Shown: positions 3,781 to 36,343 of the stretch, piece after piece
Position numbering within the stretch: position 1 is the first letter of the stretch
Layout of the letters: every line of letters begins with the position of its first letter
DNA from: Blastocladiella emersonii ATCC 22665
Taxonomy: Eukaryota > Fungi > Blastocladiomycota
Length of the DNA: 64,000 nt
Assembly: GCA_025594325.1 (NCBI GenBank)
Contig: JANHCV010000012.1
Span: forward strand, 434,001-498,000
Direction of reading: 5' to 3'
The notes under the pieces: generated by a model
What the model saw: only the letters and a program-made list of their open reading frames with translations
What the model was told of the DNA's origin: nothing
Database searches by the model: none
Made by a program: the position numbers and the translations under genes

Positions 3781-3852
3781 AACTGCCTCCCACAGAAAAA
3801 AGGGGCGCTTCGCGGATGGAGAAGAATCAGCTGTAGCGAAGCTACAGCTGAG
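3781..3852 (-). mobile_element. Solo terminus related to the Helentron-like element at 29647
   Basis: Perfect hairpin TCAGCTGTAGC-GAA-GCTACAGCTGA (3827-3851). AAGCTACAGCTGAG (3839-3852) is identical to the element's subTIR core. AACTGCCTCCCACAGAAA (3781-3798) matches the reverse complement of the element's 5' region (about 29676-29692). Confidence 0.6.
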
Positions 3853-3934
3853 TTTTTTGAAAACACGAAAACGGACACTCGGGAGTTACGTACGGGCTAA
3901 GCTCGCCCAGGCGTGAGTGAAAGGTCAGTCAGCG

Positions 3935-4047
3935 TCAACCTTCAACCTTCAACCTTCAACCTTCAACCTTCAACCTTCAACCTTCAACCTTCAACCTTCA
4001 ACCTTCAACCTTCAACCTTCAACCTTCAACCTTCAACCTTGAACCTT
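3935..4047. repeat. Heptamer tandem array (CAACCTT)15 plus one variant unit
   Basis: Fifteen units at 3936-4040, followed by GAACCTT. Confidence 0.97.
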
Positions 4048-7258: not shown

Positions 7259-8438
7259 ATGGGTCGCAAGAAGAAGCAGCTGATGGCGATGCAGGCGCCC
7301 GACCCGGCGAGCATCGCGGGGCAGACGCCGTTCCGCGCCGTCGAGCGAAAGTACAAGCAGCGCTACTCGCCGCTCGACCTCGCCGAGGTGTTTGACTGGA
7401 CGCAGTGGGATCCCAACGAGGATGAAGGTGATGTGGACTGGAGTGCGCCACCCGACGTGCCCGAGGGCCGACCGCCGTGCGCCGTCGCTGTGGAGACGGA
7501 GTCGAGCGTGCGCGACCTGCTCGCCGCCGAGTTCCCCGACCTCGACCTCCACAGCGACGGCGCATGACCGCCCGTCATCGCTTTCCTGGGCTTCCCTGGG
7601 TTCCTGTTCCTCCCCGCCGCGCTCCCGCCCGCGGTGCAGCGCCACCTCGCGCGCCGGTCGATTACGGCGTACACGGCGCCGCCCAACCAGTGCAACATGT
7701 CGGCCCACTGGTCCATCCCCGCGACGGGCCTGTGGCCGCTGCACGCTGCCGGCTCCACCGACGAGATCCCGCTGCGCCCGCCGCCCGCCGATGGCGACGA
7801 CAGCGACGAGGACGCGAGCGGGGCGTACGCGCGCGGGACTCCGCCGACGCACCTGACGCCGCTCCCCGCGGGCGCGCTGCTCGACCGCCTGCGCTGGTGC
7901 ACGCTCGGGTACCAGTACCACTGGGCCAGCAAGACGTACCGCAGCACCGAAATGTTTCCGTTCCCCGCCAACCTCGCAGGCGTCGCGCGCGCCATCGCAA
8001 CGGCCGTCGAGTCGGCGACTTATCGCGGGATCGAGGTCGGTACGCGGTACCCCGGCAAGCAGTACGTGGCGTAGGCCGGCGTGCTCAACGTGTACGGGTA
8101 CCGCGACGCGCTCATGGGCCACGTCGACGAGAGCGAGCCGAACCGCAACGCACCGCTCGTTTCGGTATCGCTTGGCGCATCCGCCATATTAGTGGTTGGC
8201 GGCGAGACGCGCGCCACACGGCCCATGGCGCTGCGGCTGCGGTCCGGCGACGCCGTCATCATGAGCGGGCCGGCACGCCGCGCGTTCCACGGGATCCCGC
8301 GCGTGCTCGAGGACGAGTGCCCGAACTGGATGGCCGAGGCCGAGGAGCAGAGCGCGGATGCCGAGTGGGGGCATGGTCGTCAAGTACCTCCGCGCGCGCA
8401 AGGCGAGGATCAATCTGAATGTGCGTCAGGTCTTCTAA
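7259..8438 (+). pseudogene. ALKBH1: ALKBH1/AlkB-like 2OG-Fe(II) dioxygenase pseudogene, copy A
   Basis: Motifs LRWCTLGYQYHW, LMGHVDESE, PLVSVSLG, LRSGDAVIMSG, FHGIPRV, RINLNVRQV. Lesions: TGA at 7565-7567 (CGA in copy B), TAG at 8072-8074, and a +1 G in the G5 run at 8367-8371. Confidence 0.9.
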
Positions 8439-9675
8439 TACACGGTGTACGCGTCAATCTGAAGTTGCTCCCGCGATGGTCTCAGAACGCGCGCTGCAGC
8501 TTCTCCTCTTGCTCCCCACCCGCAATAGATAATCCGTCCACCCATGAAACTACACTCCATGCATCTGACCCGTCTTTGATGTTTCTCGCGTTAGCTGGCG
8601 AGCCTGATGCCCTGTTCGCTCAAATTAGACCACTTGACGGGATGCGATCGGCTTGGACCGAATCAGGATGATTTGGCTGAGGTATGCGTACCCGAGTACC
8701 GGCCCGCGTTGGCAAACTTGTGGTACGCATTTCCTACTGAAGTGGGCTTAGCGTGCTCGCTGACCCTGCAGCACCGATTCCCGGTTGTGCCCTGGAAACC
8801 AGTCACTGTCACGACTAGGCGCAGCGGCGCGTGCCATCCCCCGCCTATCGTTCTCCCGAAGCGCTTCTCATACCCACTCCGCGCGATTGTCGACGCACGA
8901 ATGCGTAGGCGTAGGGTCAATCGCCAGACGAGTCTGACAAGCGGCTGCGGGACTGCTTCGAAAACGAGCGGTGATCCGAAACCCGCACACCGCTTTGACT
9001 TGGCTGGTTCTGCATCATCAGCGCTCAGACGCGCTTACTTGCGGTTCTTCCAGCGTCGGAGCAAGGGTACAGCGTGGCCGCGGGTGTTTGTTACATGGAC
9101 ATTGATTCTCGAACCCGCTCGCAATGTAGCATCATAACCTTAACCTCGATCCCAAAGCCATCTCGCCGTGTCAGCTTGGCGGATCGACATGGCACCTCGA
9201 GCTTTAGCGTTTGCGACATGGGCTCCGAATGCGCCAACAACGACGTGCTACGAGCTCACGACCTCCCGGCTCGAGTATAGTGGGCGCAGCGCTCGCGTGA
9301 GCGCCGTGAAAAACTACGCGTCGCTCACGCGGGTGCTGCGGTCGAGAAAACTCGCGCTGGGCGCGGTTGCGCATCTCGTCGCTGCGTCGGACCGGCGTGC
9401 CTGTGATTGGGCCGTTCCGTTTTCACGGCAATCGATTCATTCATTCATTTCATATACATACACGCCGTGTATATGCTGAATTAGAGGGTTTCTCCTCAAT
9501 TTCCCAGGAAGCTGTCCCGTCGTTGCTGACGCGATGCGCCACACACGTGTTCCAAGACACGTCGGCGCACGACTACAACTGCTTCGTGTCCGGACGCGTG
9601 AGGAGAATTGGAAAACGTTCTCGACCGGAGAAGGTGTATTGCGGTCACGGAAACGTGTCAACTTATGATTGCGGC

Positions 9676-10418
9676 TCAGTGAATGAAGCTGCTGATCGGG
9701 CACCGCTTCACAAACGCCTGTTGCACGTTTGGGCTGAAGAGACCGTTGCGCGTGAGCATGATCGAGTTTGGGCACGATGGAAGCGATGGAATGAGATACC
9801 ACAGCGCCTCCTCGTCAAACCCGTATTGCTCGAGTCGCAGAGCCACAAGGTTGGCTGGAATATTCGAAGCGATCACCTTGGCGCCATCCACTGCAACTCG
9901 GCCAGCAAGTTCACCGCAGTGTTTGACATAAACGTGTACATGATGGTGAGGGATTGCAGTCCAGTCGGCAATGCGCGTACAAGCGCATCGAATGCTGAAG
10001 GTGAGAAAGCGCAGTCAAGGAGGTCGAGGGCGATCAAGGAGGTGGGCAAGCAGTCGAGCCCGGTCACGCACAATGGGCCAATGGATTTGAGGCATAGCGA
10101 CTCGAGTCCCTCGTGAAGCCACGAGTCATCGAGTTGGTCGGCTTGGTAGTCGGTTGGGATGTTAGTCGGGGAGATGGAGCGGATAGAGCTCGGGAAGCGC
10201 ATCGATTGCAGCAGTGGTAAAGTGATAACGCAGTCCTCGAAGAGCACCTCGTCTACGGCACAGTCGGGCTGAGAAAGCAGGTGGGCAATCAGTTCGGCCC
10301 CGCCGCGAGTAAGCCGGACGGAATCAAGCTCAAGTTGATCAAGCGAGCCCAAAGTAAGGTCCTCGTAAAGGTCGCGCACGAGCAAGTCGCCGTTTGACGC
10401 CAAAGAATAGCCGTGAAA
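9676..10418 (-). pseudogene. LRR exon-2 remnant of the F-box-like/LRR family, frameshifted near 9890
   Basis: FHGYSLASNGDLLV...LELDSVRLTRGGAELI aligns with IRGFEVAADGDLFV...LKLDSMRFTEGGARLL at 28559. It is preceded by an intron (10419-10487). LRR-like sequence continues in another frame after 9890. Confidence 0.75.
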
Positions 10419-10487
10419 CTAGACGGGATGCGAGTAAGTGAGGCTAAGATCGGGCTCGGCATGCTGTGAAGTGTGAAAGTACCGCAC

Positions 10488-10826
10488 CTGCCTACCCGCC
10501 TCACCACCGTCCGCCGCGACCACGAGTTCCTTGAACTGCGAGCTGCCGCAGACGGACACTCGGCGATCCGCTCGTTGGCTGCGCCCTCGACGAGGTCGTT
10601 ATCCCCTTCCTCCTCATCGTCGTCATCATGTTTGTGGTGGTGGTGAAGCTTCTCGCCCGACGACGCGACGAGCGACCGCTTGCTCGCGGGCAACGGCGGG
10701 ATGGGTTCCATGGAGTCATCGGCGGCAACGCGCCCGCGCGACGCGCTGCGGATCGACGAGCTCGACCGCCTTAGCGAGTCCGCGAGGCTCGACATGCTGC
10801 GGACCAGCGTGCTTGCCATGGTGCCG
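10488..10826 (-). pseudogene. Duplicated fragment of the 3' end of the WD40 gene (about 26491-26830)
   Basis: MASTLVRSMSSLADSLRRSSSSIRSASRGRVAADD...EGAANERIAECP is nearly identical to the WD40 tail. There is a 1-bp deletion at about 10551. Confidence 0.92.
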
Positions 10827-11238
10827 ATCCTAAGGGCACGCAAGCGGCGAAGGCGCTGCGGCCTCCTGATTGAGGCGCGACGAATGCGCTCATCGATGAG
10901 TCAAAGAGACATGGCATGGATTTTTAAAACAAGAGAGCGGGTGATGTTCGACGCCGACAAAAGCGCAGGACGGGGTTGAGCGAAGTGGAAGTCCAAAATT
11001 GCAAGTTCTGCCGCGAAATCGCCGAGGCCTGGAGGGTGCGGGTTTTCTAGGGACCTCTGGTCATGTTGCATGGAGTTGTTCATTGTTTGGTTGCATTCAC
11101 ACGATAGGAGGGAGGAGGAGGTACGGTTCGACGTCAAAGGCGGTTGATGAGAGTCACCCGCGGTCACGCGAGACCTTCCCACGCGAGCTGGCAAGGCGAG
11201 ACGCGCGTCCGCTTGCTCGGGCTCTCGCCGGACGAAAA

Positions 11239-14200
11239 ATGGATGCTAATGAAACCATGGAGCAACCTGCCACTAGCGGCAATGTATCGAGCGAGTCCAC
11301 CGTGGTCGAGAGCCCCGACGCGGCGATCCCGGCGCTGTTGACGTGCCGCACGCCGTACCGCGGTGCCCGCGCGAGCTCCTTCCGACCGTACCGCAACAAG
11401 CCGCCGCGCGACTTGTTTCTCTACCACGATTCCACCTCACTTCCTGAGCTCAAGGCACTCGTGTGCGCGTGCGGCGACCTGGCCGAGGTTGCGCGCACCG
11501 TGTGCGAGGCGGCGGCCAAGGGCGCCACGGCGACGCTCTCGTTTACTCTCAACGACTGGCAGCCTGAGATCCTCGCGCGGAATCTGCTTATTCTCCATGC
11601 CCCCGCTTTCACGCCTCCGAACGATCTCGACACGGACGCGCTCGCACGCTACGTCGGCCAGCTTTGGTATTCGGTTGTTCTCGACCCGGACGTCCGCGAC
11701 TTTTGGGACGGCCAACTGCGCGCGTGTGTCGACCTGGACTGGCTCGGCTTCTCGGCCGACTCGTCGCTCCGCGTGTTGAACGAGTCGACGCTGTGTGAGC
11801 TCCGCCGCTGCTGGTGTGCTTGGCTCGAAGTGGACTGGCCCGTCGAACAACTCTTGGCAGCGCGCTACGAGTACGTCAGTACCAGCCCCTTCTCCTGCTT
11901 TTCCCAGCCCACGGCTCAAAAGGAATACGCGGCCTACGCAAATTACCTTATGGAGGGTGTACAGGCGCAGTATCGTGGTGTGTTCAACCGCGCCGAATCC
12001 GCTCGAATTGCGTGCTCCGTCGAGCGGCTTGCAGTGTCTGGCGCGTTCACGTCTTCCACTCGACCGAGTCCCGCCGTTGTCAACCCGACGATGCTGCTCA
12101 TCTCCAGCGACGATATCCCGCACTACGCTGTGCTCGCGACCGCGCTCCCCTCGGATGCGTTTGATTACCTTCTTGGCCAAGGGCTTCTCGAATCGACCCT
12201 GCTCGGCGAGATTCGCCAGTGGCTCACCGCCCTCCGCACCGGGTTTCGCGAGCACAAACTCCGCGTTGCCGTTACTCACGGCCACGCGATTGCGGTCATG
12301 GAAGAGCTTGCAGCTGACCCCTCGATGCGGTTTGACGTCGTGGATACGGGGCATCTCATGGGGTCATGCTACCTTCTCAGCATCCTCGTTCACGGGTCGG
12401 TCTTGCTTCGTCACGTCACCCAGTACAGCGATCGGGCGCGCTTGCTCACTTACTCGCGAGTGTCGGAGGCTGGCCCAGACTACGATCACGAGCTTTACGG
12501 CGCGGCCGCACTTCTGCACGAAACCTTCCCCGCGCTCTTTGGTGTCACTGTCGCCGAAAAGGTAAGTAGCGACATCATGGCGACGTCGTCGTGGTATCAG
12601 AACTTTTGCTGGAGCCGTGACCACCTCGAGCATTCCCCGGTTCGATACTTCACTTTCACCAAGCTGCCGCATCCCACCGTGCCGACCTCGCTCAGCAACT
12701 CGACGTTTCTGACCGACGCACTGCGCGAGTGCGCCCGATACGTTGCGAAGCGGCCATGGGAGGGTACGGAGAATTGATACACACGCCATGCAAGGCACAG
12801 AACTGACGATCTGATGATGTAGGTCCTTGCAAAATCACTACGCTATTCTTTCCCAAGCTCATTGCCTTCGCTCTCGCTTCGGGCCGCATTGTCGCGTCGG
12901 GGGCAACTCTGCACGCGCTGCCGCAGTGGCCGGAGGCCAGCAAACTTGTACACTCGTTGGCAACGGGTTGCGAGATGAGCGAGTCGGCGCAGGCCGAGCT
13001 CCTCGCTTCGCTGCCCCTCTACGGCTTCACTGATTCGAAGGGCACGTCCTCGTTCAACTACACCCTCGAGCTCACGATTTCCATCAACGGCGCGGCTGCA
13101 TTTCTGGCGCCTTACCTTGCTCGCGAAATCGTTCAACCCACCAAGACCTATCGGCTCGAGGGCCTTTGCGCGGAGCCCGTCTACGGCGACCCTCCGCTTC
13201 TCCGCATTCGCACGAATGTTCCAGATTTTATGCTACTCGATGCGCCCGCAGAGACCGTGCTTGGCGTATACCAGGAGCAACTTGGGTTCGGCCACTTTGA
13301 GACCTCCCAGCGCGAGCTTCTCGGCGAGCTACTTCCGCTCTCGTCCGCCGTCATCACGCGGGCGCCGTGCAAGCCGCACACTTCGCTGCTCAAGGCGCTG
13401 ATTGCGTCTCGCCCGCCGCTTCCTCAGTCCGGGCCCGAAAACCCGCGCGCCTGGCCGCTTCGCGTGGTGCACGCGGCAGACATGGGCGGGACTATCGACC
13501 TCACCTTGCGCTGGCGAACCAAGACCAAATTGTCGTTCAAATTTGTGAGCGACTCTTACCAGGTCCGCTCGATGCTTGGTGCCGTCGGCCTTGTCTTTGG
13601 CAATGGTACCCGTCAGACGATGCGGTTGGCCGCGCCCGCTCGCATCAAAGCCATCAATACGATACGCAAAAAGGACGAGATCACTCTCACTCTCGAGTCT
13701 GTCCAAACTGCGGCTATGGATCTTGCTCTCGATGTATCCCTTCCGCACATCGGGCGCCGCCTCCCTCTTGCACCGGACAACCACCTCATGGTACACTCGA
13801 TCCGCGCGGCCGTGTGCGCAGGCGTGGACCTGATCAACCTCCTGTTCCCGCCGGCGCCAGGCGTCAAGCGCACCAACGCGAACCGCATGCGCCTGCTCAA
13901 CACGGTCGTCTCGCCCAAGGCCATTGCTTCGATCGCAGTCGAGTTCACGCGGCTGATTTTCGACGCGTTTGCGGCGGGCCACCAGGCTGTCATGCACAGC
14001 GGAATGGATCGCGCCCCGACCTTGCTCATCTTCTTTGACCGACCCGTTCTCCTTACCTCGGCCGGCCCAGGAATGATCCCGACGCCCGCGCTCGAGTGCA
14101 CCGTCGCCGTGATTGATGACGCCATGAACCCGTCGCCGGAGGCCGAGTACGCGCGGCGCAGTCGCATCTTCGTCGATTGCGCCAAAGCGATCGCTGGGCG

Positions 14201-23511: not shown

Positions 23512-26500
23512 ATGGAATCGACCGATCGCGCGGTAGCGGCGCGCCACGATGACGGCCGCGCGCCCGCTCGCCGCACCAACGCCGTTGCGCCCTACGACGT
23601 CCTGTCCATTGGTGGCTCGACCGACGACGACGACGACGACGACGACGGGGACGAGTCCTTCTACGACGCGCGCGATGACGTGACGGTGCACTCGGCGTCG
23701 CGGCAGCAGAGCCCCGTCCTCGCCACCATCGCCTCGCTGCCCGAGCCCGTCTCTGATCCGCCACCAGCGGTAACGGCAGTACACGCTGCGCCCGTCTACG
23801 CGGCACCGCCCACCGGATCCATTACCGTGCTCACGGGCGGCCACCGCGTCGACTCGATCCCGACCCTCAACCTGACCCCCGACACGCCAATACGCGCCGA
23901 ACCTTTGCATGCGGGCGCCGTCTCGGTCGCGCACGTCGCCGCCGACGACGATGACGATGCACCGAGCGACTTGACCGAGGTCCCGCCACCACCACCACGG
24001 CCCGCGCCCGCGGCGTCGACCCGGTCTCCATCCCCCGCCGTCCCCGCGCGCCGCCCGCTTCCACCAACACCACTCGCCGTCGCGACCGCGAAACCGTCTA
24101 CCCCGCTCGCCGCTACGCCCGCTGCCCGCTCGCCCGGCGTCGGCGTCAGCGTGGTCCACGACCCGTTCCACCACCACCACTTGCCGCCCGATGCCGCCCA
24201 CGCGCCCGCGCACCCACCCACCAACATCCCGCACCTCCCGCCGCCCCGCTCGCGCGTCGACTCGACCACCACCACCGTGGGCTCCATCGCCTCGTCCACG
24301 GGCTCCGGCGCGCTGTCACGGCTCGGCCGCGGCCGCCGCCCGTCCGACGCGACCACCTGGTCGGGCGCCAGCAGCAATGGGAACGGCTCCGGGTGGAACA
24401 CGTCGCCTGACTCGACCGGCGCGCCTTCATCCACGTCCCCGACGACACTCGTCCGCGGGTACGACGCGTCCGATACGCGGAGCACGCGGAGCGGCCGTTC
24501 GTTTTTCACGCGTCTGCGGAAGCGGGTTGGCGGGAGCGATGATGGCGTGGGCCATGCGCCGAGTGTGCCGCCGCTGCCCGCGGACAAGGTCGTGGTCGGC
24601 CCGCACGTCCCGTCGCTCGGGGATAGTGCGGGCGCGTCGGCACGGCTCGCGGCGTGGGGCGCCGAGGGCGGGGATCCGCCGACGGATGACGATGGGGCGC
24701 GGCAGGCGCCAGTCAGCGCGGTCGAGGCGCTCGCGAGCGTCAATGTGCAGTGGCCACGGACGCGGGTACGGTTTCTCGCTCGCTGCTCAGAATAACGCAC
24801 GAAATAACACGATGAACGGTGTAGACGCGTTCCAAAGGCGTCAGCAAGCGGTGCTTCAACGGCATGGGCCTCGTGCAGACGCTCACCCCGCCGCCGCCGC
24901 CGCCACCCACCGACGCGTCCAAACCCGCCACCGCCGCCGCCGACCACGCCGCGGACCCGTCCCGCCCGCCACCGACGCTCGAGGCCGTGTGGACCGTGCG
25001 GTGGTCGCCGTGCGGCCGGTTCCTCGCGAGCGGCGGAAAGGACGGCGTGGTGCGCGTATGGGCGATAGTGGGACTCGACGGGACGCGCGGCGACGAGCCG
25101 TCCACTCCACCACCGCCCTCATCCGCGGCGCCCGGGTCCGACCTCGAGCCGCCGCCGCACCTGGTCGTCGACCGCCCGTGGCTCGAGTTCCGCGGGCACG
25201 TCGGGGACATTCTGGATCTCGCGTGGAACCGCGCCGGGTGCCTGGCGTCGTCGGGCACCGACAAGACGGTGCGCGTGTGGCACCCGAGCCGGCCCGACGA
25301 CGCGATCGCGGTCTTCACGCACGGCGACTTCGTGCCCGCCGTCGTGTTCCACCCGACCGACGACTGGCTGTTCCTGTCGGGGTGCTTTGACGGGAAGCTG
25401 CGGCTGTGGAGCCTCGACGAGAAGCGGCTCGTCGCGAGCGCGGATCTCGGGAACCAGTACGTGACGGCGGTCCAGTTCGCGCGCGACGGGCGGTGGGCGG
25501 TTGCCGGGACCTACGCCGGCACGCTCGCCGTCTACTCGACCGACGGGCTCGGGCTGCAGGGCCAGGCCGTGGTGCGGAGCAACTCGCGCCGCGCGCGCGT
25601 CGCGTCGGCGAACGCGCGCCCGTGTAAGATCACGGGCATCGAGCCGTGGCCCGACCCGGCCGGGTTCGGCGACAAGCTAGTGGTCGCGAGCAACGACTCA
25701 CGCGTCCGCATCATCGATACCGCGGACCTCCGCGTCATCGCCAAGCTCAAGGGGCACAGCAACCAGCACGCGCAGATCCGCGCCCATGTCACCGAGGATG
25801 CAAGGTGGGTCGTGTGCGGGTCCGAGAACGGGTGGGCGTTCGTCTGGGATACCCTCGGCGTGCCCGAGCTCCGCCCGTCGCCGTTTGGCGGGCACCACCC
25901 ACCCGTCTCGCCGACCGCCGGGTCCGCGATCCCCGCGCCCGCAACTTCCCACGGCAGCGGCGGCGGCGGCGGGGGGAACTCGCGGTTCAGCCGGCTCCGC
26001 ACCGCGCTCGCGTCGCCGTGGTCGTCAGGCAGCAACGGGTCCACCTCGCCAAACGGCTCCCTGTCCCGCGGCGGCGGCACCCACACCGTGCCGCGCAACG
26101 GCGCGACCCCGCCGCCCGCCACCACGATCACGGGCGTCGAGACGTTCCAGGTCTCGTCGTGCACCGTGACCAGCACGTCGATCGCCCCGCTCAAGACGCG
26201 CCTGCTCCTCGAGGCCGCGGGGCTCCTGCCCGCGCGCTGGGGTTCGGCGGACGCGGCGGGCGGGGAAGCCGGGTCAGGCGCCGACTGGACGCTCGTCGCG
26301 GCGTCCGACCAGGCCGGCGCGATCCGCCTGTTCATCAACCTCCCGCCCGCCGCGCTCGCGGTCCCGGTGCCCGCTGCAGCCGCGCCGGCGCCGGCAACGG
26401 CGAGTGGGACTGAGACCCCGTCCACGCGCTCGGGCACCGCGACGCCGACGGGCCGCGGCCCCACCGCCACTGGTGCCCCGTCGGGCTCGGGCACCATGGC

Positions 26501-26900
26501 CAGCACGCTGGTCCGCAGCATGTCGAGCCTCGCCGACTCGCTCAGGCGGTCGAGCTCGTCGATCCGCAGCGCGTCGCGCGGGCGCGTTGCCGCCGACGAG
26601 TCCGTCGAGCCCGTTCCGCCGTTGCCCGCGAGCAAGCGGTCGCTCGTCGCGTCGTCGGGCGAGAAGCTTCACCACCACCACGGCCACGACAACGAGGAGG
26701 AGGAATGGGATAACGACCTCGTCGAGGGCGCGGCGAACGAGCGGATCGCCGAGTGTCCGTACTGCGGCAGCTCGCAGTTCAAGGACCTCGTGGTCGCGGC
26801 GGACGGTGGAGGCGAGGCGGGTGGGCAGGCGCCGCGGATCGCGGTGTGCTGTCAGTGCATGCGCGTGGTACGCGATCCGGCGCATGTGCTCGGAATGTAA
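23512..26900 (+). CDS. WDR44/Dgr2-like WD40 protein with C-terminal CxxC...CxxC (intron 24766-24824)
   Basis: Motifs VWTVRWSPCGRFLASGGKDGVVRVW, FRGHVGDILDLAW, DKTVRVWH, FLSGCFDGKLRLW, LVVASNDSRVRI, KLKGHSN. Long disordered N-terminus. Confidence 0.85.
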
Positions 26901-26930
26901 GGGGCGTGCGTTGTATATAGACAGACTGGG

Positions 26931-27928
26931 TTACAGGAGCAGGTCTTCGAAATCATCCTCGGCGGCGCTCTCGTGGCGGTGCGACGCGGCGGATGATGTA
27001 GGGCGGTCGCGTCGCCCGCGATCCCGTGAGCGCGAGCCCTTGCTTTCGGAATCGCCGCGCGAGCGAGATCGGCGGCGGGATGAACCGGATCGAGACCGCT
27101 CGCGCTCGCCGCGGTCAGAATCGCGAGACGAGCGAGGCCGAGATCGCTTGCGCTCTCCGCGCTCAGGATCGCGAGGTGAGCGGAACCGACTGCGCGACCG
27201 CCTCCGACTCTCGGCGTCCTTCCGCTGATCGCGATTGCGTCTCGAGTCCTCCTCCTCGACCGACTCGCCGCTTTTCTTACGATCGCGGTCGCGGCGGTAA
27301 TGCAGCTTGTCCGAACATTTCGGGCATAGGCGCAGCTTGACGAGCGCGCGGTGCTCGGCGCCGCCGTCAGCTGGCTCGCGGTACCGGAACGGCACCTCCC
27401 AGCTCGTCAGGTCGCGGTCGCGCTTGCACGCCACATTGCCGCACGACCACTGGCCGCGGCCGTCGAGGACCTCGGGCTGCGTGCGCCAGCGCATCGCAAT
27501 CTACACGTGTGCGGCGGGTGAGCCCTTGCTCGTGTGGAACAGGCGACCGAAGCGCGTACCAGGCCCGTCTTGTACCGTGACATGTCACACAGGGCGTACT
27601 CCTTGAACAGGCGGTCGTAGTAGGCACGCGCGAGCTTGGCCTCCCACCGCTGCGTGTGCGAGAGGTGCGCGAGCGCCGCGTCATCCTCCTTGTCGTCGTC
27701 CTCGCGCAGGAACCGGTGGTGCCGCCGGATCACGTCCTCTTCGGTCGTGTAGTTGGCCGGCAGCGCATCGGCGGCTTCCCTGGCCGTGGCGAGCGCGCCC
27801 GCGCCGCCGTAGTACAGCACGTAGTGGTCAATGAACCGCCGGTGGCGGTCGTACTACGGCGAGTGGGTGTGGGTGTGAGCGGGCATAAGTTGCAGCAAGT
27901 CGCAGTGGCGGGTTCATACGGCATTCAT
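26931..27928 (-). CDS. FRA10AC1: FRA10AC1 spliceosome-associated protein (2 introns)
   Basis: Spliced product: MNA/YDRHRRFIDHYVLYYGG, WEAKLARAYYDRLFKEYALCDMSRYK, MRWRT..EVLDGRGQWSCG, WEVPFRY, ALVKLRLCPKCSDKL, and a C-terminal FEDLLL. Confidence 0.92.
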
Positions 27929-28060
27929 GGCAGGAGGGTGAGGACAGGGAGAACAAGAGTGTCTGGCCGCCGCGCCACAGCTGATCCGCACGCCGACTTC
28001 GCCACACTCGAATCGCCCTCTCTCGCTCCCCCCACACATCGCTCTCATAGACGCAAACGA

Positions 28061-29518
28061 ATGAACACGGTCTCAACGAGGGCCTGCAACTGCCCTACAT
28101 GCCCGCCACGACTTCCGTTCGACGTCGTTGAGGGCATTCTCGTCCACGTCGCACTTGGCCACCACGACGCATCTCCCAAGCAACTGTTCCAGTACCTGCG
28201 CGTGCTCCCTCGGGAGTATGCTCCGCGAGTGCACCGTTACGTCCTCCAGTGCCTCGGCGTAGACTGGGCGAGCGCGGGCGGCCACGTCCGCTTGTTGGAC
28301 GAGTTGCGCGTGTCGGGCGCGCCGCTTGTGTATACCGACAAGGCCATCACGAACGCATGGTCGAAGCGTCGCTACGAGTCTCTCGAGTGGTGGCGCGAGT
28401 CCGGGCTGCCGCTGAAACTTGGAACGCTGCCGCCGTCGGGGCTCCGCAAGGCCCTGCTTGGTATCACGACGCGCCCTGTCCCCAAGAAGCCAACGATGGT
28501 ACGCCCTGCTCTGACTCTACTTGCCGTACCAGTGCTAATACTCATCTCGTCGTACTAGATCCGAGGGTTCGAGGTAGCAGCTGACGGCGACCTGTTTGTC
28601 GCCCACGGCTACGACTGGATTGCGACCGGCACCATGCAGACCGTTGAGCTCAAGCTTGACAGTATGCGCTTCACCGAAGGCGGCGCTCGCCTGCTCGGCC
28701 GCGCGCTTGCCCAGCCAGGGTGCCGCATCACCGCATTTACTGCGACTTCGTGCGCCCTCACGCTTCCGATGCTTCGGCAGATGCTTGCCCATCGCTCAAT
28801 CTCGACCGTGACCCTGTCCGAACTTTCGTTCTGCTAAAAGGACGCGCCGCTTACTGGCCCATGGCTCCCTGACGGCGTCACGACGCTCAAGCTCAGCAAC
28901 GTGTTCCTGAGCCACGGGCGCGGGCTGTCGCAGCTGCCAACTTCCCTGACCACGCTTGAGCTCAACTGCACCGGACCGCTCAACGTGCTGCTTCCGCTCG
29001 CGGAGGCAATTCCGTTCCGCCTCGAAACGCTTTCAATCACGAGCGATTGCGTTGGCACTGCGACCATGGAAGCCCTCGCTAAACGGTTACCGCCGACCCT
29101 CAAGCATCTCAAGTTTGTCTTTTCCAACCCCGTCGCCGAGGCGTGCGTGGCCGCTTTAGCGCACGGACTACCGCGTGAACTCGTCTCGCTCAAGCTGCAC
29201 TTCATCAAGCACGTCCAGGGCGGCAAGAACGCCATGACGCCGCTCATGGCCGCGCTCCCGCTGACGCTTGAGCACCTCGAACTCTCGGGGTGCAAGCTGC
29301 GTGAACCTGATTTCGCGCTCATGGCGAGCTACATGCCGCCTCACCTGTCCCAGCTTTGTGTGTGCAACTGCGGGATCGAGGACGTGGGGCTCGACGTGCT
29401 CGTGCTGGCGCTTCCGCGAACACTGCGTCAGCTTGACGCAACGCGGAACGACCTCAAGTTTCAGCGTTGGCACCGCGAGCTTTCGAAACAGTTCCCAGGA
29501 GCGAGCTGCAAGGTTTGA
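28061..29518 (+). pseudogene. F-box-like/ankyrin-like/LRR gene with one premature stop (intron 28499-28558)
   Basis: Motifs LPFDVVEGILVHVA, VDWASAGGHVRLL, LEWWRESGLPL and LRRs. In-frame TAA at 28835-28837; the same frame resumes afterwards. Confidence 0.8.
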
Positions 29519-30121
29519 AGTTGATACCATAGTCGTGCGCCGACGTGTCTTGGAACACGTGTGTGGCGCATCGCGTCAGCAACGACGGGACAGCTTCCTG
29601 GGAAATTGAGGAGAAACCCTCTAATTCAGCATATAAACAGCGTGTATTCTCAGCTGTAGCTTTAGCGAAGCTGAGTTTCTGTGGGAGCAATTGAAACCTA
29701 TCAGGCACATCAACCTTGCTCTTGTGGTCACATGAGTGGCTCAGTGACCGTTTTCGATTTTCGTCGCGCGACGAGTTCCGTTGTTTTTCGCTTTCACTTC
29801 ATTCCGACCCCTGCAACGTAAATCTGGACTGTGCTTTGCCTTGTCCCCAACAGTTCGAGGCTGTTCACTTCGAGGGGAGCGAGGTCCTGTGCAGCGGTTC
29901 CCGTGCGCAGGCGCGACGAGACGGACCTCGCTCGAAACTGACTGTTCAGCATCACGTGACCTGACATCAATCCTGTCTGGCTGCATTTTCGCGCCCTCGG
30001 AAGCTCTCCCACTCCACGCCCGCTCGCTCGCGCTTGCCGCTGCTCGTCGACGCTCTTTGAGACCTCCTGTGCTGACCAGCCGACGGCTCCGCCTCCTTCG
30101 CAGGGCCCCAACGGTCCGCCC

Positions 30122-30778
30122 ATGTTCACGGCCGGTCCCTTGTCGCCCGCCAAGATGGTTCCCGGCGCTGCGGCCGCGCCCGCTGCGCTCGTCCCGCTCA
30201 TGGCCGCGTGCACCACCCGCTCGCCGACTTCCACCTCGGCGTCTGTCAACGCGCCGTCAGGCGGCACCACGTTGGGCAGCACCACGTCCGGCAGCGCCAC
30301 GACGCCGTCGGGACCCGCAGCGTTGGCCGTCGTCCAGGAGCTTGACATCAACCTGCAGGAGTGGGACGACGTCGGCAGCGAGTCCGACATGACCGTGGTT
30401 CCCGCGTCGTCGTCCGCCATGACCAAGAACAAGAACATCACCAAGATCGTTGTCAACTTGGAGGCCAATGAGGAGGTCGACGCCGACGAGGAGGAGAGCG
30501 AGTGCGAGTCGGGCCCGTCGCCGTCGTCAAGCCGCGCGCGCAAGGTGGCCACCAAGGCCAAGGGCCGCGACAAGAACAAGACGGTCAAGACCCCGCCGGC
30601 CTCGCCCACCAAGCGTACCCGCACGTCGGCCGTCAAGGGCAAGTCCGGCGCTGCCGTCCCTGCCGCCCAAGACGACAACAAGGCCGACAACGACGACTCG
30701 GCGACCCCGCCGGCCTCGCTGACCAAGCGCGCGCGTCGCGGTCCCGCCAAGGGCAAGGGCAAGGACCGCTCGGCCTGA
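30122..30778 (+). CDS. Low-complexity acidic/basic ORF carried inside the element
   Basis: 218-aa ORF with strong C/G-ending codon bias, an acidic patch, and a repeated TPPAS(P/L)TKR motif. Confidence 0.55.
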   Translation: MFTAGPLSPAKMVPGAAAAPAALVPLMAACTTRSPTSTSASVNAPSGGTTLGSTTSGSATTPSGPAALAVVQELDINLQEWDDVGSESDMTVVPASSSAMTKNKNITKIVVNLEANEEVDADEEESECESGPSPSSSRARKVATKAKGRDKNKTVKTPPASPTKRTRTSAVKGKSGAAVPAAQDDNKADNDDSATPPASLTKRARRGPAKGKGKDRSA

Positions 30779-31105
30779 TCCTGATCCTGTTCCTTCCTTC
30801 GTTTCTTTCGAAAATACTTCCGCTGTCTGATATATTCCAAACTCTTTTTCTTCCAACTGGTTACTACTCGAATTTGTGAGGTGCTCGTCGACTGGCGAGC
30901 TCAAAGAGTTTACCCCTGAACTCTGAGAACGCGTTTCAAAGACGCGTTGCGTGACGCGTCGCGTCGGCGCTCGCGTTCGTGTTCTCACAACTGTGACGCG
31001 CGACGCGCAACGCGAAGAGCCCTCGCTTCTCTGTGCTCTCTCCCAAACCCACAATACACTTGGTCAATCTCCATGTAAACTGCTAGCCGTGCTTGGTCTG
31101 CAAGG

Positions 31106-32186
31106 ATGCCACCTAAACAAACTTTGGCCGACATGGCCGTTCGCGGCCTCAAAATGCACCAACTTCTTGCCAAAAATCCTCAAGCTTCCGCACAGGAGGT
31201 TCGAGAAGCGACGGGCTTGCACGGGTCGTACCTCGTCAAGGCAGCGACTGAAGCATACCTGCAAGCTCAAGACCACCCACTTGCTCAACATATTATTGCG
31301 ATGAAGTCTCAAGGTGACGGCCTGCTTCACATCATAAGCACGACATCGCTACCCGCCAACGTGGTTCACTTGATCCTGGCAGTTCACCACGCTTCAACCC
31401 CAAGCGACGCTTCCAACGCGCAAGTTATCAGTTCGGACACAGGATCGACTGGTCACGGCACTTCTTCCTCGCGACCGAGCTCGCCAACATCTCCATCTCC
31501 TTCCCAATCAAGCGCCTCACCGCCGCAAGTTCCGCCTTGGCCAATGGATCTGAACCAGGAGCACCTGGAAGGTCTTCTCGGCGAGGCCTTGCACGCGCTA
31601 CAAGACGAAGCTGTACTTCACTCGGCTTGCGCAGTTTGCGGTCAGCTCTCGCCAAAGTCGACGTGCTCAACGACACCGATAGCCGACTTCCTCGCGGCTC
31701 ACAGCGAATTCCTTGCTGAAAAGGCGGATCACACGTGGAAGAAGTTCTGCGCGGGAAAGGAGGGATTCACGCGACCTCCAATCCGCGAAGAATTCCGTAG
31801 TGTTCCCCTTTGTGAGGACAGAGTTGATGGCGAGAGTATGTGCTGGTGTATCTTGCCAAAAACAACTCTGACAGTTGATCCGCTTCCTTGTAGACGTCAC
31901 CGTGTGCTCAACCTGCCTCACGCATCTCAATTCGAGTGACCCAAAGAAACGTTTGCCCGTTTCTTCGCTCATGAACTACGGCAATCCCGGAAAGAAACCG
32001 ACTCCGCTCGAAAATCTCACCCGCTTGGAGCAGATGCTGATAGCTCCGGTCCGAGTGCGAGTCTACGTCTACAAGTTTGGATTTGGCCGCGACAAACGAA
32101 CGCACCAAAGCTTTGTCAAAGGCAACGTCATCGCCTTCCGTCAGTCGACGCAGCACACAGGTAAATCCGCGCCGCTCACCAGCTAA
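31106..32186 (+). pseudogene. N-terminal part of the Helitron Rep-helicase gene (DUF6570-like; intron 31836-31893), truncated
   Basis: CAVCGQ ... spliced NVTVCSTCL, then PVSSLMNYGNPG, LENLTRLEQMLIAPVR and VKGNVIAF, the pattern typical of the region upstream of the Helitron HUH core. Confidence 0.75.
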
Positions 32187-32680
32187 CGATTCATAATAAC
32201 AGCATCGGAATCGTCAACGGGATGATGGGTAAGGTCGTCGGCTTTGCTGTCGATGAAGACGGCCAGATCAAGGCTGTCATTGTACGACCCGACCGCGACC
32301 TTCAGCGAATCCCAAAACTCAACGGAATCGACAAGTTGGGTGACATCCCCATCGAGCGTGAGACAATTAGCAAGATGGTCACCATTGACGGCAAGCGGTG
32401 GACCTTTTGGCGATCGCAGTTCCCCATTGAGCTGAGCTACGCGATCACGGCGCACAAGGCGCAGGGGATGACCCTGAACAAGGTCATTGCCGACTTCGGC
32501 GACCCCAAGCTCCCGCATCGTTTTCCTGCCCGGTACCCGTACATGGTCCTCTCTCGAGCGCGCAGGACCAAGGACATCCTCATCATCCGGTTCAACAGTC
32601 GGGTTCTCGTGCAGAAGGCATTACAGCACGTGGCGAAGGACATGAAGCGACTGTCCCTGCTGAGCAGGATTGAGAATTGA
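32183..32680 (+). pseudogene. C-terminal PIF1-like (SF1B) helicase fragment
   Basis: GIVNGMMG, SQFPIELSYAITAHKAQGMTL and YMVLSRAR (motifs V/VI region). Walker A/B motifs are absent. Confidence 0.88.
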
Positions 32681-33236
32681 TAAACTACTTCACTTTCACC
32701 AACTGAAACAGTCTCAAGAAGCCAAGTAAAGCTACAGCTGAGACCCAAGTGTGTGCGCAGCACACACACCTAGTGTATATGAAATGAATGAATGAATCGA
32801 TTGCCGTGGAAACGGAACGGTCCAATCACAGGCACGCCGGTCCGACGCAGCGACGAGACGCGCAACCGCGCCCAGCGCGAGTATTCTTGACCGCAGCACC
32901 CGCGTGAGCGACGCGTAGTTTTTCACGGCGCTCACGCGAGGGCTGCGCTCAATGAAACCGCACCGGGAGGTCGTGAGCTCGTAGCACGTCGTTGTTGGCG
33001 CATTCGGAGCCCATGTCGCAAACGCTAAAGCTCGAGGTGCCATGTCAATCCGCTAAGCTGACACGGCGAGATGGCTTTGGGATCGAGGTTAAGGTTATGA
33101 TGCTACATTGCGAGCGGGCTCGAGAATCAATGTCCGTATGGAAAACATCTGCCGCCACTTCATACCTTTACGCTAACACGGCAAACCCGCAAGAATGTGT
33201 GCGTGAGCGCCGTGGATGCACGACTGGTGAACTTCA

Positions 33237-33882
33237 CCGTGCACCAGCGCAGGCGGTCAAGCAGCGCGCCCGCGGGGATTGGCGTCATGTGCGTCGGCGG
33301 GGTCCCGCGCGCCTATGCCCCGCTCGCGTCCTCGTCGCTGTCATCGCTGTCGGCGGGCGACGGGCGCAGCGGGATCTCGTTGGCGGAACCGGCAGCGTGC
33401 AGTGACCACAGGCCCGTCGCGGGGATGGCCCAGTGCGCGAACATGTTGCACTGGTTGGGTGGCGCCGTGTACGCCGTCAGCGACCGGTGTGCGAGGTGGC
33501 GCTGGACCGTGGGTGGAGGCGCAGCGGGGAGGTACAGGAAGCCGGGGAAGCCTGGGAACGCGATGACGGGCGGTCGTGCGCCGTCACCTTGGATATCGAA
33601 GTCAGGAAACTCGGCGGCGAGCAGGTCGCGCGCGTTCGAGTCTATCTTCACAGCGACGGCGAACGGCGGCCGACCCTTGGGCACGTTGGGCGGTGCGCTC
33701 CAGTTCACTTCGCCTGCATTGTTCTCAGGATTCCACTGTGTCCAGTCAAACACCTCGGCGAGGTCGAGCGGCGCGTACCGCTGCTTGTACTTTCGCTTGA
33801 CGGCGCGGAATGGCGTCTGCCCCGCGATGCTCGCCGGGTCGGGCGCCTGCATCGCCATCATCTGCTTCTTCTTGCGACCCAT
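33237..33882 (-). pseudogene. ALKBH1: ALKBH1 pseudogene copy B (nonsense + 3' truncation)
   Basis: TAG at 33313-33315 (TAC in copy A). Similarity to copy A stops abruptly after LRWCT at about 33237. Confidence 0.88.
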
Positions 33883-33949
33883 AATGGGACGTTGCAGCAA
33901 GTTTACATGTGACCCATGGAAGCCATCGAATATATGGGTGGAGAATGGA

Positions 33950-35020
33950 TCAGAGCTCGCCACGAAACGTCGCATTGACAACGCCGCCGAGCGCCGCGTC
34001 CACCTCGCACACCACCCCGCGCAGCAAGTCCGAGAAGATGAGCGACTCGGCACGGTCCACGAGCCGGAACAGCTCGGCGGGGTCGCGCACGCCGTAGTGG
34101 TCGGCGACAAATTCGGCGCGCGATCGGCGGTTCGCGTAGATCCGCGCCGCGCGCGAGGCATCGGCGGCGAGCACGGCGCGGTCGCGGTCAGCGGGGCGAA
34201 GCGGGTGGACGTGCACGCGCGTCGCCCGGGTCCAGACGAGCGGTGGCGCAGCAGGGGCGGAGGCGATCTCGATGAGGCCATTTGTCGCCAAGGGGCGTCG
34301 TTTCCGTCGACGCGAGCGTGGTGTTGATGGAGCTTGGACTAGAGGAAGCGCTGCGGGTGGTTTTAGTGGCGTGTGGCGTGTGCGCTCTGGCGGTGCGGCA
34401 GAAGCTCGGGGTCGACGCGGGGTCAACGCGATCTGCACGACCGGCGGCTCCTGCGGTTCCCGCAGCGGCGGGCGGGATTGTGGTGGGTCTAGCGGATCGT
34501 CGGTCTGGATGGCAATGGCCTGCATTGTTCTTGGAGGTTGCGGGTGTGGTAACAAGGAAGACGGCGGGAGCGGAGGTGGAAGCGTTGGCCAAGCGGGTGA
34601 TGCCGCGTTCCTACGGTCAGGCAAGCGCGCGGCCTGCTTCTGGCGCATCCGCAGCATGCGCAAGAGGCCGCCAACAGCCGGAACGTCATCTAGCAGCGGA
34701 GATGACGAAGGACGAAGCGGCTCGGACGGAGGCGACAGCAGCGGCCGTGGCGGGTCCTCCTGCTTCACAGCGACGGGCTTCTTGGTCAAGGAGACCCGCG
34801 AGCGAGGACCACGCCATCGCCGTGCCGCGAGCTGCTGCTCTCGCAGGACCCGCTGCTCCTCGACGGCGCGATCGCGCAGCCGGCGCAGACGTGCGTCGTA
34901 CGCGGCGAGCTCAATGGCGCCTGCGTTCGCGTCGCCGTCAGCGGTCCCACGAGCACCCAAGGCCCGCGGGCGGAGGCCGGTACGTGTCTGCGGCGGCTTG
35001 CTTGCTGTCAATGGATACAT
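33950..35020 (-). CDS. Unknown protein, copy B
   Basis: 356-aa open paralog of 6136-7191. Confidence 0.7.
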   Translation of the reverse strand: MYPLTASKPPQTRTGLRPRALGARGTADGDANAGAIELAAYDARLRRLRDRAVEEQRVLREQQLAARRWRGPRSRVSLTKKPVAVKQEDPPRPLLSPPSEPLRPSSSPLLDDVPAVGGLLRMLRMRQKQAARLPDRRNAASPAWPTLPPPLPPSSLLPHPQPPRTMQAIAIQTDDPLDPPQSRPPLREPQEPPVVQIALTPRRPRASAAPPERTRHTPLKPPAALPLVQAPSTPRSRRRKRRPLATNGLIEIASAPAAPPLVWTRATRVHVHPLRPADRDRAVLAADASRAARIYANRRSRAEFVADHYGVRDPAELFRLVDRAESLIFSDLLRGVVCEVDAALGGVVNATFRGEL

Positions 35021-35161
35021 TGCATGGTGTGCGTGAGGTACAGGGTGAGAGCGAGGGAGAGCGACGACGACATGAAGGACGCGTTGCGCGCGTTGCGGCC
35101 CGACCTCTCCCCGCAACGAATCCGCTCTCCATGTAAACTTGATCCAACCTGCTGCAACGCC

Positions 35162-35867
35162 ATGGGAATCGACCTCTTGATGACACCGCGCATGCGCGAC
35201 TTCTTGCTTCATGTCAACGTGAGTGAGGCGACACGCGTGACGCTCGCGCCGTTCCTCGACGACGACCACGTTCCGTTCTCGGTCCTTCTCGCATGCCACG
35301 CCGAGGCCAAGGAGCGAAGTGCTTCAGAGGACGGTGTGGTGCCGCCGTTTGACGAGCTGACTCGTGGCTCCCGCGTCTACATTGCGCCGCCAGCACCCAA
35401 GCCCAAGGTACTCTCCTTCCCGTGAGAAGGCGTCGTTACGTCGTAGAAACTGACTGCCACTCTCGAGTAGTCGCCCGAGTTGCAGCGCATCCTCGCCGCG
35501 ATCTGCGCTGAGCAGGAAGAGTTCGAGTACGAGCGGATGACGGGCCGCCGTCTTAGCGACAACGATCTGGGGGATCCCGCGCAGCTCGCCGAGGACCCAA
35601 AGGCCGTGTCCAAGGTTCTGATCGGGTCCTTCAATGTCTTCTTCACTGCCGCGTCCGTCTTTGTGGCCGTCGTGTGGATCGGGCCGACCATCTCGGACAA
35701 TGTCGCCTGGGTACGCCTTGCCGAGCAAGGAAGCGGGTTACGAGTGAATCCTAACGAGGCTCATACGATTGTAGCGCGTCATGGCCGCATTCAGCCTGGC
35801 CATGATCATCCTCGCCGGCGAGGGGTGGCTCGCGTACCGTAGCGCGTTTCAGCGAAAAATGGAGTAG
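35162..35867 (+). CDS. VMA12: Vma12/TMEM199-like, copy B (introns 35408-35470, 35711-35774)
   Basis: Canonical GT-AG introns; the spliced ORF is intact and ends RKME. Confidence 0.85.
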
Positions 35868-36343
35868 CTTGCCCTCATCTGTACGTTTCCGAGAGCTTCA
35901 TCCTTCTCTTCATTGTCAGGACCGTGCCCAGGAGGCCGAGCGGCTCGATCCGTCTCAAGAGCGCGGCAGGGGTTAGCGAGCCGGACGGAAGATCGAAAGC
36001 AAAATGAGAGCGGCGACTCCGTCGAGCGCAGGATCATGTCTCGCAATCGCGGCGTGACATCGGCGTGACCGTGTTTTGACTTAATCGCGGGCCGAGCACA
36101 TTTCACGCGGCCATCGTATGAAAGCCGAGACCTGCTCTGCGCAGCATCAGACTATCCGCGCGTCAAGCCAGCCTGTCGCAAGCATTCTGGTTCGATAGAT
36201 CAAGAAACAGGGCTGTATTTTGATAGAACGCCCACGCCTTCTCAAACTCTTCCGCTCAGTCGCGGGCGGTTATATCACACACACAACAATCACACGAGAA
36301 AATGTTCAAGACGGCAATCACACGGGGAGAGGGCCACCATAAC

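Follow-up and report, generated by a model that had tools for sequence, protein, structure and literature searches.

What kind of mobile element interrupts one arm of an inverted duplication in the fungus Blastocladiella emersonii ATCC 22665 (Blastocladiomycota)? The stretch analysed here, referred to as the window, comprises 64,000 nucleotides of contig JANHCV010000012.1 (assembly GCA_025594325.1, positions 434,001 to 498,000, forward strand). The original prediction, made from this sequence alone, described the insertion as a rolling-circle, Helitron-like element that combines subterminal repeats and a 5′ fold-back with a 3′ hairpin and CTAG, and took it for a special intermediate form. Our analysis supports the combination of features, while the special status falls away. 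The ends match the Helitron2 definition point for point and only the CTAG terminus is atypical, resembling that of Helitron1 and proto-Helentrons, which argues for a Helitron2-type family rather than a special intermediate. The element very probably belongs to a young Helitron2-type (HLE2) rolling-circle family that has many copies in B. emersonii, and is itself non-autonomous.

A precise insertion and its paralogous empty site

The insertion measures exactly 3,127 bp (window 29647–32773, plus strand) and lies in one arm of the inverted duplication, the other arm of which has the site unoccupied. With a slash marking each junction, the left junction at 29646/29647 reads ...GCGTGTA/TTCTCAGCTGTAGCTTTA and the right junction at 32773/32774 reads ...ACACACCTAG/TGTATATGAA, while the paralogue, on the minus strand at 9459/9458, reads ...GGCGTGTA/TGTATATGAA. 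Self-BLAST of the window aligned 29530–29647 with 9575–9458 (98.3%) and 32774–33135 with 9458–9097 (95.6%). The larger inverted duplication pairs 26490–36080 with 10825–5081 and has a 2.8-kb core at 87.5%. The two flank alignments run up to the junction and overlap by exactly one base. The insertion is therefore precise and without a target-site duplication (TSD), as had been predicted together with the exact empty site, and one T can be assigned to either side. Two equivalent readings follow, A/TTCTCAG...CTAG/T and T/TCTCAG...CTAGT/G. A form skipping exactly the 3,127 bases is also present in Logan contigs of the source sample at an 85% likeness threshold, and is most simply the paralogue itself.

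Elsewhere in the duplication, the shared blocks are separated by unrelated sequence of 2.7 kb in one arm (window 26832–29530) and 0.9 kb in the other (9575–10484), so the arms have undergone further insertions and deletions or gene replacements besides the Helitron.

Terminal structure

Helitron2 is defined by a 5′ asymmetric terminal inverted repeat (ATIR) 0–2 nt from the end, a 3′ ATIR ~20–30 nt from the end and just before a hairpin, and a 5′ hairpin involving the ATIR (Bao and Jurka 2013, PMC3627910). All three are found here (Table 1). The 5′ ATIR lies 1 nt from the 5′ end, or 0 nt if the ambiguous T belongs to the host, the 3′ ATIR lies 30 nt from the 3′ end, and a 5′ hairpin of weak energy is formed with part of the 5′ ATIR. 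A perfect 17-nt pair such as this is expected ~0.0003 times by chance per 3.1 kb, and the ATIR motif has three matches in the window against a mean of 0.03 in shuffles of the window. The 17-bp asymmetric subterminal inverted repeats (subTIRs), the CTCAGCT–AGCTGAG fold-back and the 3′ hairpin followed by AC and CTAG were thus all recovered where the original prediction had placed them. Its 5′ TT is likewise present at the start of the element; the choice between TT and TC is undecidable, since every copy is flanked by T at both ends, against one T only at the empty site.

A multi-copy family with constant ends

Further copies came from 11 loci of GCA_025594325.1 that were reached via annotated fragments, and the window and these loci together amount to ~270 kb. 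Ten independent complete copies form family A (the window, L001, L002, L003, two in L004, L006, L007, L008 and L012; locus L005 is the window's own), and L009 carries a 5′-truncated copy. These copies are 1.9–4.1 kb long and 95–99.9% identical, with the window copy ~97–99% identical to its family. All begin TTCTCAGCTGTAGCTTTAGCGAAGCTGAG and all finish with the same ATIR, a CCCAA spacer, the hairpin and ACCTAG; all that sets them apart is a nested series of internal deletions. Copies lacking the subTIRs, which had been named as contrary evidence, did not appear among the complete ones. The other complete family A copies have identical ends, ATIRs included. L006 and L011 (JANHCV010000011.1, ~501–523 kb and 448–471 kb) carry the same copies of family A and of its sister, family B, with identical flanks, so both elements were copied by a large segmental duplication and the two loci do not count as independent insertions.

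Contigs of the source sample gave a matching picture. Summed contig depth in the terminal bins stands at ~60–160 times the flank level, and the rise falls exactly at the element limits. It is ~10–70 times the flank level over 29735–31057, 2–3 times over 31058–32233 and 15–30 times over 32234–32674. Joints within the contigs from 30991 to 32467 mark a shorter and commoner form, those from 32018 to 32298 the L001 form, and those from 29690 to 32727 a mini form of ~90 bp. The family clearly has multiple copies, with limits that match the ends deduced for the element.

Identity of up to 99.9% among copies at different sites suggests recent activity, so transposase should still be supplied from some source, or should have been until recently. 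The window copy itself appears to be decaying. Among 28 listed positions at which it has A or T and the majority of family contigs has G or C, 23 are CpG-to-TpG or CpG-to-CpA changes, which suggests decay driven by cytosine methylation.

Compensatory changes in a sister family

Family B comprises two complete copies (L006:1265–6980 and L009:328–4493) and further single ends in L007 and L008. It begins TTCTCAGCAGTAGGCTGAG and finishes with GCCTACTGCTGAGA, a short spacer, a hairpin of GTGTGC with GCACAC, and CCTAG followed by T. Compared with family A, its 5′ ATIR is changed at positions 8, 13 and 14, and its 3′ ATIR carries the matching complementary changes, so that pairing is kept over 14 nt. 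The 5′ stem, CTCAGC with GCTGAG, is kept as well, with the loop reduced from 13–15 nt to 5 nt. These compensatory changes and conserved stems are direct evidence, drawn from comparing the two families, that both hairpins, the pairing of the ATIRs and the CTAG/T terminus are functional signals and did not arise by accident in one copy.

Two further end-like sequences were noted. At L008:7468–7508, an A-type 3′ hairpin and CTAG lie immediately beside a minus-strand family B 5′ end; this arrangement could be a hybrid 3′ end, with a B-type ATIR and an A-type hairpin, or the product of one element inserting into the 3′ end of another. In the window, a lone motif resembling a 5′ end lies at 3790–3853 on the minus strand. 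It reads CTCAGCTGTAGC-TTC-GCTACAGCTG, forming a perfect 10-bp stem, and is followed ~50 nt later by TTTCTGTGGGAG, as in family A; its first base is A, not T, and no 3′ partner was found in the window. It may be the truncated end of a third related family. Beside it, at 3935–4047, is a tandem array of ~16 copies of the 7-bp unit GGTTGAA (minus strand).

The target site

Every copy has T before TCTCAG and T after CTAG, against one T at the empty site. When the element is read as TTCTCAG...CTAG, the preceding base is A at 7, T at 4 and G at 3 of the 14 5′ ends, and the following base is always T. When it is read as TCTCAG...CTAGT, the host base on the 5′ side is always T and all four bases occur at the next position. 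The circle junction is identical under either reading, and sequence alone does not distinguish the two; the same TC-versus-TTC ambiguity was described for FoHeli1 and FoHeli2 (Chellapan et al. 2016, PMC5148889). The predicted A/T target thus holds for the window copy and is not a rule for the family. Consensus letters at loose ends in the contig mapping were kept out of these statistics, as their adjacency to the junction was unclear. The flanks of the sites are AT-rich, with 71% AT within 5 nt on each side against 37% AT for the window (63% GC).

Coding remnants and internal deletions

The element retains pieces of a RepHel gene of the Helentron/Helitron2 lineage. The open reading frame (ORF) at 31875–32186 matches DUF6570 (PF20209, E = 8e-13) over profile positions 1–69 of 133, and a 277-residue ORF (31106–31939) lies directly upstream of it in a different frame. 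DUF6570 is specific to the HLE2 clade according to HELIANO (PMC11417382). Downstream, the ORF at 32222–32680 is the C-terminal end of a Pif1-type helicase. Its Pfam scores are below threshold (Herpes_Helicase, 18.7 bits; UvrD_C_2, 18.3 bits; curated cut-off ~27), and its identity rests on tblastn matches to RepHel C-termini and on the longer ORF of the L002 copy, which passes the PIF1 cut-off. The last helicase intron is 62 nt long, with a GTACGT donor, a CTAAC branch site and its acceptor at 32202. Homology with L002 resumes at 32153, 12 nt into this intron, so a single internal deletion, as read from the alignment, begins midway through DUF6570, spans the Rep domain and ends in the last helicase intron. 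Having lost Rep, most of the helicase and the second half of DUF6570, the copy cannot move by itself.

The helicase stop codon (32678–32680) is 93 nt from the element end, leaving no room for an endonuclease domain to follow, and it lies 46 nt before the 3′ ATIR here and in all copies. A Pfam search for Exo_endo_phos in the element found no match. The check for an endonuclease domain that the original prediction had proposed was negative: none follows the helicase. At L002:9199–10332 and 10368–10826, a Pif1 helicase frame is open from Walker A to the C-terminus and is broken only by the 62-nt intron; by its sequence content this copy is a Helitron derivative that retains the helicase alone and lacks Rep.

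Full-length proteins closest to the helicase tail show 30–42% identity to it and carry DUF6570, Helitron_like_N and PIF1, to which some add an endonuclease or UCH domain; among the four with a readable Rep motif, three have the Helentron-type RGS Rep signature. Against a representative library, the helicase tail matched only short fragments of the same genome, followed by relatives at up to 60% (short fragments) and up to ~41% (full-length RepHel). Word-index searches with the L002 helicase ORF and the 277-residue N-terminal ORF returned no close proteins. The closest full-length helicase relative, at 30–42% identity, is on L010 (a Logan contig, run SRR11659451; genes at 7463–9946 and 10001–14170), where a DUF6570 gene is followed by Helitron_like_N and PIF1 with the Rep motif VEAQGRGSLHCH; no recognisable element ends could be found from this single copy.

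Upstream of the RepHel remnant, in its 5′ 1.4 kb, the window copy retains the C-terminal part of a family ORF of 469 residues (P0161, L006:10001–11532), which is represented by at least 16 annotated gene models in the genome. The 971-bp deletion at 30080/30081 truncates this ORF in the window copy. The N-terminal 230 residues of P0161 are non-repetitive, and its tail is acidic/basic and of low complexity. Neither the 469-residue ORF nor its 218-residue remnant matched Pfam, an atlas search gave weak leads and nothing useful, and a single-sequence AlphaFold2 model of the former was unusable (mean predicted local distance difference test score, 31.6). At window 28901–30778, gene model P0166 (H9P43_008653; L005:6122–8404; 423 residues) fuses an upstream host leucine-rich repeat (LRR) gene with the 218-residue ORF of the element. 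This chimera may have been created by gene prediction, or it may reflect a genuine transcript fused through the Helitron. Scanning the window against Rfam and for tRNA genes gave no matches.

Table 1. Coordinates of the element, its parts and its empty site in the window
Feature	Position	Strand	Evidence
Whole element, non-autonomous deletion derivative of Helitron2-type family A	29647–32773	+	Junctions and empty site; 10 independent copies with the same ends; contig-depth rise at these limits
Paralogous empty site, other arm of the inverted segmental duplication	9458–9459	−	Sequence inspection and self-BLAST
Ambiguous T, first element base (5′ TT) or host T of a T/N target	29647	+	1-base flank overlap; 1-base shared joint in contig mapping; T before TCTCAG in 14/14 5′ ends
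5′ ATIR, 17 nt, TCTCAGCTGTAGCTTTA	29648–29664	+	Perfect complement of 32727–32743; compensatory changes in family B
5′ hairpin using part of the 5′ ATIR, 7-bp stem, CTCAGCT with AGCTGAG	29649–29675 (29649–29655 with 29669–29675)	+	Folding −6.3 kcal/mol, z = −1.1
Breakpoint of an internal deletion; 971 bp present in most family copies are missing here	30080–30081	+	971 extra bases in L002, L004 (both copies), L006, L007, L008 and L012; loose contig ends at 30080 and 30081
218-residue low-complexity ORF, C-terminal part of the family's 469-residue ORF	30122–30778	+	Identical to the tail of P0161 and P0166
RepHel N-terminus remnant: 277-residue ORF (31106–31939), frameshift, first half of DUF6570 (ORF 31875–32186)	31039–32152	+	Pfam match; L001 is the only other copy with this segment
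Main deletion junction, 12 nt inside the last helicase intron	32152–32153	+	Alignment with L002 and L003, in which homology restarts at GCACACAGG after donor GTACGT; loose contig end at 32153 with helicase exon sequence
Last exon of the Pif1-type helicase (2B domain to C-terminus) and stop	32203–32680	+	tblastn to RepHel helicase C-termini; copy L002 above the PIF1 cut-off; acceptor 32202
3′ ATIR, TAAAGCTACAGCTGAGA, 30 nt from the 3′ terminus and 5 nt before the hairpin	32727–32743	+	Sequence inspection
3′ hairpin, GTGTGTGC-GCA-GCACACAC, 8-bp stem	32749–32767	+	Folding −9.2 kcal/mol, z = −2.2
3′ terminal CTAG, T next in every copy	32770–32773	+	10/10 independent family A copies and one 5′-truncated copy; 3/3 family B 3′ ends

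Alternative explanations

Several results sit awkwardly with the Helitron2-type assignment. The canonical HLE2 target is T/T, but the only empty site here has one T. The folding energy of the 5′ hairpin is not significant against shuffles (z = −1.1). No Rep domain was found in the window or the 11 loci by tblastn with six RepHel proteins or with a Rep hidden Markov model built from them, so HLE2 membership rests on DUF6570, the helicase neighbours and the terminal structure rather than on a Rep phylogeny. A circle or tandem junction was not seen among the contigs, which are a poor tool for such junctions, and summed contig depth is not equal to copy number.

One rival would refine the assignment rather than replace it. 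The family could be a true relative of the proto-Helentron, belonging to or bordering on the Helentron clade, in which Helitron1-like TT...CTAG ends and an A/T target were retained or acquired anew; it would be the first such lineage outside the oomycetes. Proto-Helentron-Pi of Phytophthora infestans has 5′ TT, 3′ CTAG, an A/T target and no endonuclease (Thomas et al. 2014, PMC4067079). A re-analysis with HELIANO gave it ~12-nt inverted repeats and DUF6570, with the left repeat ~3.6 kb internal and a separate 5′ stem-loop, and found no relative outside Phytophthora in 404 genomes (PMC11417382). The B. emersonii family shares the 5′ TT under one reading, the 3′ CTAG in both A and B, inverted repeats, DUF6570 and a helicase with no endonuclease after it, and A precedes TT in 7 of 14 ends. 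Against kinship, the ATIR is terminal as in Helitron2 and not 3.6 kb internal, no SET-domain or other accessory ORF occurs in the element, the target is not consistently A/T, and a shared 4-nt terminus could be convergent; no Rep sequence that would place the family in a phylogeny was recovered from the window or the 11 loci. On balance we consider this kinship unlikely. The opposite assignment, to a canonical Helitron (HLE1, with TC...hairpin-CTAG and A/T) bearing an incidental inverted repeat, is disfavoured to the point of being highly improbable. It would account for the 3′ hairpin and CTAG, 6 nt apart, for a 5′ end readable as A-T/TC and for the lack of a TSD, but not for a 17-nt perfect repeat at the exact Helitron2 positions that is kept by three compensatory changes in family B, nor for DUF6570 or a target that is not consistently A/T.

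The remaining rival concerns history rather than class. Seamless excision of rolling-circle elements is known, and the element could predate the duplication and have been precisely lost from the 9458/9459 arm later, which would make the empty site an excision product. Two paralogues alone cannot polarise the event, and loss of one T from an original T/T target would fit the single-T empty site. The window copy is, on the other hand, ~97–99% identical to a young family, against 87.5% between the arms over 2.8 kb, and a later insertion is simpler, though the near flanks are 95.6–98.3% identical, so the dating is not clean. We regard prior presence and loss as quite improbable. Insertion after the duplication, as originally proposed, thus stands as the parsimonious reading, with precise loss from the other paralogue as its alternative.

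A proposed origin and mechanism

The progenitor would have been at least ~7–8 kb long, with the upstream 469-residue ORF and a RepHel comprising an N-terminal region, DUF6570, an HUH Rep and a Pif1-type helicase, and no endonuclease. The window copy has lost 971 bp of the upstream ORF and the segment from mid-DUF6570 to the last helicase intron. For its mobilisation we propose steps drawn from established Helitron biology, namely work on Helraiser as summarised in PMC5148889 and the model of Bao and Jurka. A RepHel acting in trans, presumably from a present-day Rep-bearing partner, would nick the plus strand at the 5′ end, beside the T before TCTCAG, and the helicase would peel the strand off 5′ to 3′. 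The second nick would be marked by the 3′ hairpin and CTAG. The two ATIRs would pair with each other, competing with the 5′ hairpin, and thereby help to define the end point, as Bao and Jurka proposed for Helitron2 (PMC3627910). The single strand would circularise with the junction CTAG-TTCTCAG, and the circle would be pasted beside a T in a short AT-rich patch with no target duplication.

Implications

The family is a base-exact, empty-site-verified Helitron2-type family in Blastocladiomycota, where our literature search found no characterised Helitron-like elements. Nothing characterising Helitrons in Blastocladiella or Blastocladiomycota was found in that search, and the B. emersonii genome paper is silent on transposons; B. 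emersonii is a zoosporic fungus, and the original prediction, which knew of no such element in zoosporic fungi, agrees with the literature found. As a young, many-copy family with nested deletions and a sister family with compensatory ATIR changes, it is a natural data set for studying how Helitron2 ends are recognised. Its conserved CTAG blurs the end rules by which annotation tools separate Helitron1 (TC...CTRR and A/T) from Helitron2 (TIRs, that is terminal inverted repeats, and T/T), and such elements are likely to be missed or mis-called by these tools. The gene model joining the host LRR gene to the element ORF illustrates the consequences that an insertion can have for annotation.

A wider evolutionary claim is possible and, in our judgement, doubtful: families A and B may represent an HLE2 lineage that keeps the ancestral hairpin-CTAG/T signal while using Helitron2-type ATIR pairing, forming a bridge between Helitron1, proto-Helentron and Helitron2. 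If this were true, the proto-Helentron state would be an old and widespread intermediate rather than an oomycete oddity, and if the Rep of the master element grouped with that of proto-Helentron-Pi, it would be the first relative outside Phytophthora. Overall, the locus is of moderate interest, chiefly to transposon specialists, as a well-documented new family in a new host phylum.

Comparison with known rolling-circle elements

Among known systems, the closest agreement is with Helitron2/HLE2, which shares the ATIR positions, the 5′ hairpin using the ATIR, the 5′ T, the lack of a TSD and of an endonuclease, and the many deletion derivatives. Compensatory ATIR changes, reported for Helitron2, are seen here between families A and B. 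The start at TC(AG) after a host T and the insertion after (A)T in AT-rich sites recall FoHeli1 and FoHeli2 of Fusarium oxysporum (PMC5148889). The family differs from these elements in its 3′ CTAG, where FoHeli has ATTTT and others a T-run, in an ATIR of 17 nt against the quoted 8–15 nt for Helitron2, in the single T rather than TT of its one empty site, and in its host phylum, Blastocladiomycota.

With canonical Helitrons (Helitron1/HLE1) the element shares a 3′ hairpin a few nucleotides before CTRR (here CTAG), the lack of a TSD, a host T on the 3′ side and possibly a 5′ TC. It is unlike them in its covarying ATIRs, 5′ hairpin, DUF6570 and a target that is not strictly A/T. Helentrons and their non-autonomous HINE/DINE-1 derivatives resemble it in their subterminal inverted repeats, of which the 5′ one has a further inverted repeat nested within it, in a 3′ stem-loop and in abundant deletion derivatives; unlike Helentrons, it has no apurinic/apyrimidinic (AP) endonuclease after the helicase and no 3′ T-run.

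The likeness to proto-Helentron-Pi lies in the 5′ TT and 3′ CTAG (10/10 independent family A copies and both complete family B copies, the first T being ambiguous), in insertion 5′ of a T without a TSD (at A/T in about half of the ends here), in a DUF6570 RepHel lineage without an endonuclease, and in a boundary proven by a paralogous empty site. The left repeat is, in contrast, terminal and perfect here, with none of the internal placement behind a separate 5′ stem-loop; SET and other accessory genes are absent, the base before TT can also be T or G, and the window copy is a defective 3.1 kb against an autonomous ~14 kb. Taken together, these comparisons place the element in a new family of the known Helitron2/HLE2 class, one with proto-Helentron-like terminal nucleotides, and not in a new kind of element.

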